DNA of 64,000 nucleotides from Piromyces finnis finn (taxonomy: Eukaryota; Fungi; Neocallimastigomycota): contig MCFH01000008.1 in the NCBI GenBank assembly GCA_002104945.1, positions 186,001 to 250,000 on the forward strand, written 5' to 3'. Positions 34,187 to 39,276 of the stretch are shown in pieces. Position 1 is the first letter of the stretch. Each line of letters begins with the position of its first letter. The notes under the pieces are model-generated. The model did no database searches, had not been told where the DNA came from, and saw only the letters and a list, made by a program, of their open reading frames with translations. A program made the position numbers and the translations under genes.

Positions 34187-37100
34187 ATGATCTTCCCAAA
34201 ATTAAATTTATGTGGAAGTACTCCATCAGAAGATGAAGTTAATCTTTATCAAACCTACTCTCTTTCTGGTAGTGTTTTAATTGAAATCGATAAAGAAACT
34301 CCAGTTAAAGAAGTTTTAACTCCAATTCTTGTAGCTAAATTCGCTACAAATTGGGTTCAATTACCAAATTTCGAAAATGCAGATGAATTATCAGATTTTA
34401 TGTTAAAAATTTTAGATAGTGGTGCTTCAAAAGTTGCCATTCCATATCCACAACCATTCTCAACTGATTTATTAATTGAAAAATTTTCTCAATTTCCAGA
34501 TGATAGATTATCATTAATTATAAATTACAAAAATCAAAAAGAAACCCTTGATATTATCAACCAATTTAATCCATATGTAAGTGCTTTTATAATTAAAAGT
34601 AATGTCGATGTATGCCCATTATTAAAGCCAAATACAAAAGCACTTTCTCAAAAAGAAAATTTCGAACGTGAAATTTACACTAAAGAATTAACTCAAATTC
34701 ATGCTGTTGCTAAGAAACATAAACTTATTATTGATTTAGTTAAGATTAATCCAACTTGTCAATTAATTACCAATCTTGATGAACTTAGTTTCAATTTATT
34801 ATTAGATTCTAGCAAACTCGCTATTGGTGTTTATAAAAACAATAAGGGAGATGTTACTGAAGATGGTAAAATTGATATTGGTGCTGCTTATAGTGCATCT
34901 TTGATTACTGACCGTCCAGATAACCTTTATTCTACTGTTGTTGTCGATGAACAAGGTGTCGCTTTAGGATTAGCTTATTCAGATGCTGAAAGTATTTCAG
35001 AAGCTTTCCGCACTCGTCAAGGTGTTTACAAGTCACGTTCTCGTGGTCTTTGGTACAAGGGTTTAACTTCAAATTCTGTTCAACAATTATTAAGAATTGA
35101 TGCTGATTGTGATAAGGATACTATCCGTTTCACAGTTCACCAAACCGGAACTGGTATTTAATTATTTCTTTTTTAATTTATTATATAATAATTAATTTCT
35201 ATATTTAGATAATCAAATTATTCAATTGATGTATACATTTACAAAAATATTAAAATAATATTCATTAAAATAGAAATTTATTAGTTTAGTTTGAGAATAA
35301 GTTATTAATTAAATTCCTTTTTATTGGTCTTTAAATATTTAAAACTTTTTATTATATTATATATATGAATTAAATCAATTATGAATGCTTGGATTGATAC
35401 CTTTACAATATATATTATAACATATCTTGATATAATTAATTCATGGAATACAATGTAAATAATAACAAAAGGTTTTTGTCACCTTAATACTAGAACTTGC
35501 TTCGGTGAAGATTCTGGTATTACTGCTTTAGAAGCTGTTCTTAAAAAGAGATTTATTTCAGCTCCAGAAGGTTCATACACAAAGCGTTTATTCAATGATG
35601 AAAAATTACTTCATGCTAAGATCATGGAAGAAGCTGCTGAATTATGTGAAGCTACTGATAAGGATGAAATTGCATGGGAAGCTGCTGATGTCATTTTCTT
35701 CTCATTAAGTAAGTGTATTGCTCACGGTGTTACTTTAAGTGATATAGAAAGTCACTTAGATCGTCGTTCTAAGAAAATTACAAGACGTCCAGGTAATGCT
35801 AAGCCATTCAGAAATCCAGTAGAAGAAGCTGCAAAAAAGGAAGCTGAACAAAAAAAGGCTGAAGAAGCTAAAAAGGTCGAAGAAAGCAAATATGATTTTT
35901 CTTTAAAGGACTTTGATGCTTCCACTATTTCTGCTGAACAAAGAAAAGTTTTAGAAAACAGACCAATTCGTTCAGCTGATAACATTGCCAAGCTTGTTAC
36001 TCCAATCATCGAAAATGTCAGAAAGAATGGTGATAAGGCTATTAAGGAACTCACTGAAAAATTCGATGGTGTCAAGTTAGATGATGTTGTTATTCAAGGT
36101 CCATTTACTGAAACTCCAGCTGAATTATCACAAGAAACTGTTGCTGCTATTGATTTAGCTTTTGATAATTTAGTTAAATTCCACCAAGCTCAATTAGATC
36201 CAAAGCCATTACATGTTGAAACCACTCCAGGTGTTAACTGTTCTCGTTATGTAAGATCAATTGAAAAGGTTGGTTTATATGTTCCAGGTGGTACAGCTGT
36301 TTTACCATCTACCACTATGCACTTAGGTGTTCCAGCTATGGTAGCTGGATGTTCCGAAATTGTTTTAGCTACTCCACCACGTAAGGACGGATCAATTGTT
36401 CCAGAAGTTCTTTATGTTGCCAAGAAGATTAATGCTAAGATGATTGTTAAAGCTGGAGGTGCTCAAGCTATTGCTGCTTTAGCTTATGGTACTGAAACAG
36501 TTCCAAAGGTTGATAAGATTTGCGGTCCAGGTAATCAATTTGTTACAGCAGCTAAGATGTTTGTTCAAAATGACCACTCTGCTCTTGTTTCTATTGATAT
36601 GCCAGCTGGTCCATCAGAAGTTTTAGTAAGTATTCATATTAATCAAATTTTAAATATATTAATAATTATTGTAATAGATAAATTTAAATATATAATTTTA
36701 TTATTTGTAATAATTTATTAAAAATACATTATATATAAATACTAATTAATTAATTAATTAATTAATAAACAACAACAACAACAACAACAACAACAACAAC
36801 AACAACAACAACAACAACAACAACAACAACAACAACAACAACAACAACAACAACAACAACAACAACAATAATAATAACAACAACAACAACAACAACAACA
36901 ACAACAACAACAACAACAACAACAACAACAACAACAACAACAACAACAACAACAACAACAACAACAACAACAACAACAACAACAACAACAACAATAACAA
37001 TAACAACAACAACATCAATAAAATATTAAAGGTTATTGCTGATGCTGAAGCTAAACCAGAATATGTTGCTGCTGATTTATTAAGTCAAGCTGAACATGGT

Positions 37101-39276
37101 AAGGATAGTCAATCTGTTTTAGTTGCTATTGATTTAACTGATGATCAATTTAAGGCTATTGAAGAAGAAGTTAAAAAACAAGGTAATGCTTTACCACGTG
37201 CTGAAATTGCTAAATATTCTATTGCTAACAGTTTTGCTTTACGTGTTAAGACTCTTGAAGAAGCCATTACTTTCTCTAATGCCTATGCTCCAGAACATTT
37301 AATTATTAATGTTGCTGACATTGAAAACAAGAAGGATGAAATTATTTCCAAGGTTGAAAATGCAGGATCAGTCTTTTTAGGATCTTACACTACTGAAAGT
37401 TGTGGTGATTATGCTTCTGGTACTAACCACACTTTACCAACTTATGGTTACGCTCGTATGTACTCTGGTACCAACACTGGTAGTTTCTTAAAGCATATTA
37501 CTGCACAATACATTACCAAGGATGGTTTAAAGAACCTTGGTCCAGCTGTTATGAGATTAGCTGAATGTGAAAGTTTAGATGCTCATAGAAATGCTGTTGC
37601 TGTCCGTATGAAGGATATCGTTGGTGATGAAATTCCACAAGTTGCTGCTGCTCAAGTTAATGCTGAATATGACTTCTCTTTAAAGGACTTTGATGCTTCC
37701 ACTATTTCTGCTGAACAAAGAAAAGTTTTAGAAAACAGACCAATTCGTTCAGCTGATAACATTGCCAAGCTTGTTACTCCAATCATCGAAAATGTCAGAA
37801 AGAATGGTGATAAGGCTATTAAGGAACTCACTGAAAAATTCGATGGTGTCAAGTTAGATGATGTTGTTATTCAAGGTCCATTTACTGAAACTCCAGCTGA
37901 ATTATCACAAGAAACTGTTGCTGCTATTGATTTAGCTTTTGATAATTTAGTTAAATTCCACCAAGCTCAATTAGATCCAAAGCCATTACATGTTGAAACC
38001 ACTCCAGGTGTTAACTGTTCTCGTTATGTAAGATCAATTGAAAAGGTTGGTTTATATGTTCCAGGTGGTACAGCTGTTTTACCATCTACCACTATGCACT
38101 TAGGTGTTCCAGCTATGGTAGCTGGATGTTCCGAAATTGTTTTAGCTACTCCACCACGTAAGGACGGATCAATTGTTCCAGAAGTTCTTTATGTTGCCAA
38201 GAAGATTAATGCTAAGATGATTGTTAAAGCTGGAGGTGCTCAAGCTATTGCTGCTTTAGCTTATGGTACTGAAACAGTTCCAAAAGTTGATAAGATTTGC
38301 GGTCCAGGTAATCAATTTGTTACAGCAGCTAAGATGTTTGTTCAAAATGACCACTCTGCTCTTGTTTCTATTGATATGCCAGCTGGTCCATCAGAAGTTT
38401 TAGTAAGTATTCATATTAATCAAATTTTAAATATATTAATAATTATTGTAATAGATAAATTTAAATATATAATTTTATTATTTGTAATAATTTATTAAAA
38501 ATACATTATATATAAATACTAATTAATTAATTAATTAATTAATAATAAACAACAACAACAACAACAACAACAACAACAACAACAACAACAACAACAACAA
38601 CAACAACAACAACAACAACAACAACAACAACAACAACAACAATAACAATAACAACAACAACATCAATAAAATATTAAAGGTTATTGCTGATGCTGAAGCT
38701 AAACCAGAATATGTTGCTGCTGATTTATTAAGTCAAGCTGAACATGGTAAGGATAGTCAATCTGTTTTAGTTGCTATTGATTTAACTGATGATCAATTTA
38801 AGGCTATTGAAGAAGAAGTTAAAAAACAAGGTAATGCTTTACCACGTGCTGAAATTGCTAAATATTCTATTGCTAACAGTTTTGCTTTACGTGTTAAGAC
38901 TCTTGAAGAAGCCATTACTTTCTCTAATGCCTATGCTCCAGAACATTTAATTATTAATGTTGCTGACATTGAAAACAAGAAGGATGAAATTATTTCCAAG
39001 GTTGAAAATGCAGGATCAGTCTTTTTAGGATCTTACACTACTGAAAGTTGTGGTGATTATGCTTCTGGTACTAACCACACTTTACCAACTTATGGTTACG
39101 CTCGTATGTACTCTGGTACCAACACTGGTAGTTTCTTAAAGCATATTACTGCACAATACATTACCAAGGATGGTTTAAAGAACCTTGGTCCAGCTGTTAT
39201 GAGATTAGCTGAATGTGAAAGTTTAGATGCTCATAGAAATGCTGTTGCTGTCCGTATGAAGGATATTCAAAATTAA
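34187..39276 (+). CDS. HIS4: Multifunctional histidine biosynthesis protein (HisI-HisE-HisD) with an in-frame tandem duplication of HisD; 4 exons, ~1362 aa
   Basis: Exons 34187-35153, 35472-36625, 37032-38402, 38680-39276 (4089 nt, open). HisI: [22 protein letters not shown]. HisE: [25 protein letters not shown]. HisD, present twice: [74 protein letters not shown]. Confidence 0.93.
36768..37013. repeat. (AAC)n microsatellite, about 82 units, in HIS4 intron 2
   Basis: Visible run with an internal AATAATAAT interruption. Confidence 0.95.
38548..38661. repeat. (AAC)n microsatellite, about 38 units, in HIS4 intron 3 (paralogous intron)
   Basis: Visible run with the same flanks as the copy-1 repeat. 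Confidence 0.95.

Follow-up and report, generated by a model that had tools for sequence, protein, structure and literature searches.

The HIS4 Locus of Piromyces finnis

The stretch of DNA analysed here, in the following called the window, comprises 64,000 nucleotides of contig MCFH01000008.1 (positions 186,001 to 250,000) from the anaerobic gut fungus Piromyces finnis, which belongs to the Neocallimastigomycota. At positions 34187-39276 of its plus strand, a HIS4 gene was identified, and it was confirmed that this gene carries a real in-frame tandem of two complete histidinol dehydrogenase (HisD) modules. The gene consists of four exons (Table 1), and the spliced coding sequence (CDS) of 4089 nt codes for a protein of 1362 amino acids with a predicted mass of 148.7 kDa, ending at one terminal stop codon. 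All introns are of the GT-AG type, and each HisD copy contains one intron, located at the same codon in both copies (GPSEVL/VIAD). The GC content is 0.31-0.37 in the exons, compared to 0.14-0.22 in the introns and flanks.

With Pfam, PRA-CH and PRA-PH were identified in the spliced product, followed by two matches to Histidinol_dh, each of which extends over profile positions 3-411 of 411, and the domain order is HisI-HisE-HisD-linker-HisD. With two full PF00815 matches in 1362 amino acids, the product departs from canonical fungal HIS4 proteins, which have one C-terminal HisD. The first-pass annotation of the window had described a HisD-HisD tandem after HisI-HisE in a product of about 1362 amino acids, and both Pfam and the spliced gene model agree with this description. 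The coordinates given for a unique linker of 16 amino acids were exactly right, and the proposed end of copy 2, KDIQN-stop, was found at position 39276. The statement that the second HisD follows the first one without a stop holds for the spliced CDS, but not for the genomic DNA, from which three introns have to be removed first.

The N-terminus of the window product agrees with those of three proteins from relatives (P0151, P0270, and P0271), and the joint between exon 1 and exon 2 (HQTGTG/...) is identical in the two of them that are derived from complementary DNA (cDNA), P0270 and P0271. Among the named genomes, the closest one is that of Piromyces sp. E2. Judged from its sequence, the locus can be assigned as the orthologous HIS4 of an anaerobic gut fungus.

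Each HisD copy aligns end to end with E. coli HisD, from residue ~3 to residue ~430, and solved HisD structures match the copies with E values of 1e-99 to 1e-136. The catalytic residues were placed by alignment to the structures 1K75 and 5VLB. In the alignment to E. coli HisD (1K75), the motif QAEH corresponds to Q259/H262, PEH to E326/H327, D..NH to D360/H367, and E....H to E414/H419. The Zn ligands Q259, H262, D360, and H419 and the catalytic residues E326/H327, in addition to H367 and E414, are present in both copies, which bears out the earlier assignment of catalytic and Zn motifs to each of them. The protein sequences of copy 1 and copy 2 are identical in the window, and both copies carry every catalytic and Zn-binding residue for this reason. 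On the basis of domain and residues, each copy is predicted to be a histidinol dehydrogenase (PF00815, EC 1.1.1.23) which would catalyse the NAD-dependent oxidation of histidinol.

Table 1. Exons, introns, linker, and repeat units of the HIS4 gene in the window.
Feature	Position	Strand	Content
Exon 1	34187..35153	+	N-terminal region, larger part of HisI (PRA-CH); PF01502, E 7e-17
Intron 1	35154..35471	+	GT..AG, GC 0.14
Exon 2	35472..36625	+	End of HisI, HisE (PRA-PH; PF01503, E 1e-20), Lys/Glu-rich spacer, N-half of HisD copy 1
HisD copy 1, N-half	35891-36625	+	PF00815 profile positions 3-223
Intron 2	36626..37031	+	Contains (AAC)~84 at 36768-37018
Exon 3, part 1	37032..37619	+	C-half of HisD copy 1 (rest of domain II, domains III and IV), end VRMKDI; PF00815 positions 224-411
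Linker	37620..37667	+	Unique, in frame, 16 amino acids, GC 0.42, coding-like
Exon 3, part 2	37668..38402	+	N-half of HisD copy 2; three synonymous differences to copy 1
Intron 3	38403..38679	+	Sequence of intron 2 except for (AAC)~40 at 38548-38666
Exon 4	38680..39276	+	C-half of HisD copy 2, terminates with KDIQN-stop; PF00815 positions 224-411
Repeat unit, copy 1	35889..37618	+	Whole HisD including the intron
Repeat unit, copy 2	37666..39266	+	Three mismatches to copy 1 outside the microsatellite

The Two Repeat Units

The two copies are 99.8% identical, introns included, and the HisD repeat is genuine, with a similarity far outside what chance could produce. The mismatches between the units are synonymous; those at 35896 and 35899 are located at the extreme 5' edge, and the third one is at 36508. 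In addition, the last coding base of the units differs, with ATC at 37619 compared to ATT at 39267. The sole sizeable difference is the length of the intronic (AAC)n run, with about 84 units in the first and about 40 units in the second copy of an otherwise identical intron. Because the intron is present in both near-identical units, the duplication occurred at the DNA level, with the intron included. On the minus strand, the first (AAC)n run contains a spurious poly-Leu open reading frame (ORF; 36758-37018).

Evidence from RNA and DNA Runs

Contigs of four public sequencing runs (X1-X4) were placed on positions 37010-38510, which comprise exon 3 and the intron edges and contain no internal repeat. 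X1, X2, and X4 are RNA runs from three studies, and X3 is a DNA run. In the RNA contigs, position 38402 is joined directly to position 37032, corresponding to the exon-exon joint GPSEVL/VIAD, whereas this joint was not found in X3. The joint pairs the donor of intron 3 with the acceptor of intron 2, the exon sequence flanking both introns being identical, and its presence in the RNA contigs shows that the intron has been removed. The contigs of all three RNA runs lead from the C-half of copy 1 through the linker to the copy-2-specific start of the following N-half. For X1 and X2, the linker is located inside the main high-depth contig, which is cyclic and has a length of 1401 nt, and for X4 it was identified in a contig of 118 nt, in which the linker has flanks of 31 nt and 39 nt. 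The RNA evidence is independent of the assembly itself, and it was shown that the doubled gene is transcribed and spliced and that the linker is retained.

The DNA contigs of X3 extend into the introns, and a linker contig was identified in this run, too. In X3, the unit had a k-mer depth of 343-352, compared to 188 in the linker contig and 151 in the unique upstream flank. As a contig measure, this depth is a rough guide to copy number, and the values are roughly in the ratio of 2:1:1 that is expected from two units and one linker. Two checks had been proposed together with the first-pass annotation, one on the presence of the linker in transcripts and one on the depth of the duplicate compared to its surroundings. 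Both turned out in favour of the tandem, with the linker found in RNA contigs of three studies and a repeat of about twice, not half, the k-mer depth of the flank.

Single bases differ among the runs. At position 37106, run X4, which is from a 2022 study, has C instead of T, and position 38285 is G, the base of copy 1, in the X2, X3, and X4 contigs, which are collapsed, and A in X1. These bases are consistent with the presence of both copy variants together with a slight variation of strain or culture.

That only a single HisD unit is real and the second one is an assembly artefact of mis-joined reads or haplotypes is largely refuted and extremely unlikely. A false duplication would be expected to show such a near-identity of the copies, introns included, and a single-copy path exists in some short-read contigs of relatives (L019 and L022). 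However, the copies are separated by a unique, in-frame, and coding-like linker of 48 nt, which is spanned both in a contig of the DNA run and in the spliced RNA contigs of three studies, the unit has about twice the DNA depth of linker and flank, and the junction is also present in four other lineages, with copies that can be distinguished in Anaeromyces robustus.

Doubled HIS4 Genes in Other Anaerobic Fungi

The exact junction at the protein level, located after KD[I/F] and before [Y/L][D/N]FSL, is the same in all five lineages with a doubled gene, which are the window, A. robustus, Piromyces sp. E2, the L017 type, and L003. For A. robustus, a public protein of 1339 amino acids, annotated as 'hypothetical protein' (BCR32DRAFT_298374, P0151), shows the order HisI-HisE-HisD-linker-HisD. 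It is only 85% identical to the window product and therefore originates from a different species. At the A. robustus locus (L002), the N-halves of the two copies are identical over 732 nt, 27 of 588 nt (12 amino acids) are different between the C-halves, and the introns are divergent, with numerous indels. Since these copies differ in their introns and C-halves, they are distinguishable from each other, and their identity is a mosaic.

The public model for Piromyces sp. E2 (P0272) is designated 'partial' and halts exactly at KDI. The E2 scaffold (L001) goes on in frame past KDI with VGDVIPPITAFKNKEDKK, followed by a further HisD N-half and then by an N gap. On this scaffold (KZ150777, L001:7514-11060), three HisD N-halves are located around two N gaps: a complete one, a partial one that follows a gap, and another complete one that precedes a gap. 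Either the number of HisD units in E2 may be three, or there may be an error in the construction of the scaffold.

In metagenome contigs from five samples (L017, L018, L020, L021, and L023), the junction was identified as KDI-VGDVIPPVTAVQAKAEDDKK-YDFSL, and L017, which is part of a 20.9-kb contig, contains the entire doubled gene with its four exons. A further metagenome contig, L003, contains KDI-EGSNVEDPYVNAVAKVVEGDQ-YNFSL in a single exon, with an intron end before it. The start of the repeat was located at L002:6035-6060 compared to 7642-7670 in A. robustus and at 7231-7246 compared to 8778-8793 in L017. In both cases, the repeat also takes in about 16-26 nt upstream of HisD, which belong to the Lys/Glu-rich spacer between HisE and HisD (EEEKK, DDKK), and the original duplicated unit therefore started within the spacer.

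When exon 3 (C-half, linker, and N-half) was used as a query against 1.84 billion representative proteins, no match spanning the junction was present among the best 150 of 12,729 matches. These best 150 are ordinary single-HisD proteins, and the top named matches are all fungal trifunctional His4 proteins with 57-66% identity in HisD. In word-index protein searches, the A. robustus protein P0151 was the only full-length doubled protein, in a collection that contains neither the window protein nor the exon 3 ORF of L017, so that blanks from it say little. For the window gene, no model was found in the protein collection searched.

The linkers of the five lineages have lengths of 16, 18, 20, 21, and 22 codons and are all open and in frame. 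The A. robustus linker, QEGITTVGSTVYLEAKTEEEKK, is longer than the window linker and different from it. All five lineages have a Gly at position 2 of the linker, and the motif VGD.IP is common to the linkers of the window, E2, and L017, at the level of both DNA and protein. As far as can be judged from these features, the linkers appear to be divergent but related. In L017 and A. robustus, the 3' end of the linker is a copy of the terminal part of the HisE-HisD spacer (9 of 2000 and 46 of 2000 shuffles, respectively). The 5' part with VGD.IP has no significant similarity to the spacer (688 and 626 of 2000 shuffles) or to the 3' untranslated region. Noncoding DNA in these genomes has a GC content of ~14% and is rich in stop codons, compared to a GC content of 0.42 for the linker.

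Divergence and Concerted Evolution of the Copies

Between the lineages, the synonymous divergence (dS) was 0.23-0.61, and the ratio of nonsynonymous to synonymous divergence (omega) was 0.05-0.29, corresponding to purifying selection. The dS values within a genome are 0.008-0.018 in the window and 0 in L017; between the first and the third N-half of E2 (N1 and N3), dS is 0.076, with 20 of the 23 differences in the first 273 nt, and between the A. robustus C-halves it is 0.11, with an omega of 0.27. Where paralogous copies differ, omega is about 0.25-0.27. In maximum likelihood trees of the N- and C-halves, the copies cluster by species with support values of 100/100 and 99/98, and an Anaeromyces-like clade is separated from a Piromyces-like clade, with doubled genes in both. 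An assignment of the A. robustus C-half of copy 2 (C2) as the orthologue of the single-HisD cDNA P0270 was rejected, because C1 and C2 are 27 nt apart, compared to distances of 44 and 40 nt to P0270.

Paralogues within a species are closer to each other than orthologues between species, the junction is shared, and mosaic tracts are present in A. robustus and E2. Concerted evolution explains the near-identity of the copies, a point which was absent from the first-pass annotation. Given a junction common to the lineages and linkers whose divergence is about that of the species, one duplication before the split of the lineages, followed by repeated conversion or unequal exchange, would be the simplest explanation. 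According to this scheme, the whole HisD module with its intron would have been duplicated in tandem and in frame, giving the order HisI-HisE-HisD-linker-HisD, and this single old event would have preceded the separation of the sampled lineages. Gene conversion or unequal exchange would have homogenised the copies, and selection would retain the doubled state.

A recent duplication that occurred independently in each lineage would account for the near-identity of copies within a species, and linkers of A. robustus and L003 that are only weakly similar to the Piromyces-like ones, as well as a linker 5' part for which no significant source sequence was found, would also fit independent events. 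This explanation is very unlikely in the light of the identical junction in protein coordinates in all five lineages and of the invariant Gly at linker position 2. In addition, the linkers of the window, E2, and L017 share VGD.IP though the units differ by a dS of about 0.3, the unique linkers have diverged about as far as the species, and a partial conversion of older copies is indicated by the mosaic pattern of identity that A. robustus and E2 show.

In published phylogenomic work, the position of Piromyces is at the base of the crown group or adjacent to it, and this group was dated to 66 +/- 10 million years ago (PMC6712302). With this phylogeny, the age of the single duplication may come close to that of the crown clade, and it would amount to tens of millions of years if the crown is spanned by Piromyces and Anaeromyces. 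Recombination between near-perfect direct repeats of 1.5-1.7 kb would excise one unit and leave a functional canonical HIS4, yet at least five lineages have kept the doubled gene. The linker is present as a single copy without a template for conversion, yet it is open, in frame, and coding-like in the five lineages. Because the doubled state persists despite such a simple reversion by recombination, it is likely that selection maintains it.

Single-HisD Records and Splicing of Exon 3

Records with a single HisD have also been identified in anaerobic fungi. P0270, P0271, and P0312 are CDS-only, cDNA-like records from other anaerobic fungi, and L019 and L022 are metagenome contigs, the exon 2 protein of which (P0372) is the same as that of the junction-bearing contigs. 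L024 and L025, CDS-only records of sample 3300018087 of the Joint Genome Institute (JGI), contain single-HisD forms of the same or related genes. L019, L022, L024, and L025 probably result from repeat collapse in short-read assembly; in such assemblies, repeat collapse, pop-out alleles, and exon skipping are indistinguishable. This implies a practical warning, since short-read assemblies of genomes and transcriptomes from these fungi collapse or break at HIS4, with gene models that are missing or partial.

Exon 3 comprises exactly 457 codons, and a joint of exon 2 with exon 4 would give a normal His4 of 905 amino acids. The introns flanking exon 3 are identical apart from the length of (AAC)n, and single-HisD CDS records exist in transcriptome-like data of relatives. 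These features would fit a working enzyme that is a single-HisD His4, produced by skipping of exon 3, with the doubled mRNA as a minor or inert by-product. Such a role of exon skipping is judged to be quite unlikely. Fungal splicing seldom skips an exon of 1.4 kb. In run X4, the depth of the linker contig was, as a rough measure, 0.59 of the unit depth, which fits a full inclusion of exon 3 with its expected maximum of 0.5, while far less would be expected if exon 3 were mostly skipped. The position of the linker within the main high-depth contig of X1 and X2 and the open and coding-like state of the linker in five lineages argue in the same direction, and repeat collapse explains the single-HisD records equally well, as short reads cannot separate isoforms.

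Pairing of the HisD Modules

HisD is an obligate homodimer with an interface of >5200 Å2 per monomer, in which the L-shaped arms formed by domains III and IV are mutually swapped (PMC5585171). Domain IV of the partner gives each active site a Zn-ligand His and a substrate-binding Glu, and it sits mostly on the partner domain II, which includes the N-terminal segment of the partner; the size of the dimer is about 90 x 70 x 50 Å (PMC5585171). In the window, two complete protomers are present in one linker-joined polypeptide encoded by one spliced mRNA. Linkers of 16-22 residues, if extended, cover roughly 55-75 Å. Since domain IV packs on the partner domain II holding the N-terminal segment, a linker of this length may be able to reach from the last helix of domain IV to the N-terminus of the next module. 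From the published HisD structures, an intramolecular pseudo-dimer is topologically plausible, in which the two HisD modules of one chain would pair and form a single-chain version of the obligate arm-swapped homodimer. This intrachain pseudo-dimer appears to be the most likely arrangement, with the odds slightly in its favour.

His4 is described as a dimer, and homologues of HisI and HisE dimerise too. This would be in favour of HisD modules that pair between chains, either 1 with 1' and 2 with 2' or in daisy chains, resulting in a higher dosage or a larger assembly, and two HisD dimers formed between the chains of a parallel homodimer are sterically conceivable. Pairing between chains is the main alternative but is considered to be rather unlikely, because the high local concentration favours intrachain pairing, the N-terminal segment of the partner is part of the same domain II that is contacted by domain IV (PMC5585171), and all five linkers have an extended reach that is to be seen in relation to the dimer dimensions given above.

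Whichever pairing is realised, the ratio of active sites becomes 1 HisI : 1 HisE : 2 HisD. An uncoupling of HisD dimerisation from that of HisI and HisE, as brought up in the first-pass annotation, is speculative. In the window and in L017, the two copies have the same protein sequence, and any benefit of the second copy must therefore be one of dosage, stability, or assembly, with no division of labour; based on the identity of the proteins, a division of labour between the copies can be excluded for these two genes.

Taken together, the best explanation of the whole, to which we assign a probability of about 0.75, would be an old doubled HIS4 which originated from a single duplication, was homogenised, and is kept by selection, with intrachain pairing as the likeliest arrangement of its HisD modules. 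Several points weigh against it. The homology of the linkers from the Piromyces-like lineages with those of A. robustus or L003 is weak, and the sampled genera leave out Neocallimastix, Orpinomyces, Caecomyces, and Pecoramyces. The single-HisD records of relatives could represent real single-copy alleles or transcripts in which exon 3 has been skipped. X3, with its roughly measured depths, may be the source library of the assembly, and the three RNA studies are from one organism and may all have used the same isolate. The product of 149 kDa is a prediction from gene model and RNA, and the pairing within the chain is proposed from published HisD structures.

A more far-reaching proposal can be made tentatively, and as a whole it is rather doubtful: the doubled HisD may be ancestral and selectively maintained in anaerobic gut fungi as a natural single-chain dimer, homogenised by conversion together with its intron for tens of millions of years and retained because two HisD sites in each His4, or a dimer unable to dissociate, would help the NAD+-dependent double oxidation in strictly anaerobic, NADH-rich cells. 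The link between the doubled HisD and the NADH-rich anaerobic lifestyle is a speculation.

Gene Neighbourhood

The gene neighbourhood of HIS4 is conserved, with a leucine-rich repeat gene upstream and a formin gene downstream. The upstream gene (22650-29408, minus strand) is an ORF of 2252 amino acids with C-terminal leucine-rich repeats, and its counterpart also flanks HIS4 in L017. The downstream gene (43115-47219, plus strand) codes for a protein with PTEN_C2 and FH2 (formin) domains, and a counterpart is also present at the E2 locus.

Comparison to Known Systems

In the canonical HIS4, an N-terminal region is followed by HisIE, a spacer, and a single HisD; the survey in which this is described (PMC1963479) does not include the doubled form. 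The window gene is similar to fungal HIS4 of the S. cerevisiae YCL030C type in its N-terminal region, in the order I-E-D, and in the variable Lys/Glu-rich spacer before HisD, and its product is 52% identical to a His4 from a Mortierellomycete. In contrast to the canonical HIS4 with about 800-900 amino acids and one HisD, a second complete HisD follows after a linker of 16 amino acids. The A. robustus protein P0151 shares the architecture of the window product, and the intron position is likewise the same in its two copies, whereas its linker is longer, the C-halves of its gene are 4.6% apart, and the introns are unalike.

In the literature on HisD and histidine biosynthesis in anaerobic fungi and on doubled or tandem HisD, nothing on this architecture was found, and a search of the wider literature on HIS4 and tandem duplications gave papers on canonical HIS4 and HisD only. 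The first-pass annotation had named no described His4 with this architecture, and no such paper was found; the architecture itself is not unique to the window, since it is present in A. robustus P0151, in E2, and in metagenome contigs. The doubled A. robustus protein is already public but uninterpreted, and the architecture is undescribed in the literature found.

Like the subunits of the HisD homodimers from E. coli (1K75) and Medicago (5VLB), the two modules align end to end and have all Zn-binding and catalytic residues. In these enzymes, the partner is a second polypeptide, whereas here the partner may be supplied by the same chain. The gene would represent a natural experiment in which an obligate domain-swapped homodimer has been made one chain, a state that is otherwise engineered by design.

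Histidine biosynthesis is a textbook case of enzyme evolution by gene elongation and gene fusion, and the events known so far are of ancient date, with strong divergence since then. Examples are the half-barrels of hisA and hisF, hisB, and an ancient sub-domain duplication in the core of hisD (PMC7284861); a doubled whole HisD is not mentioned there. The HIS4 gene of the window is similar to these cases in being an in-frame fused duplication in tandem within a his gene. It differs from them in that not a sub-domain but the entire enzyme has been doubled, in one fungal phylum, and that the copies are kept near-identical by concerted evolution, whereas the modules of the ancient events have diverged. 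It provides a clean eukaryotic case of intragenic concerted evolution, and the elongation of a gene by a whole enzyme is visible in progress, with linker, intron, and conversion tracts still legible.

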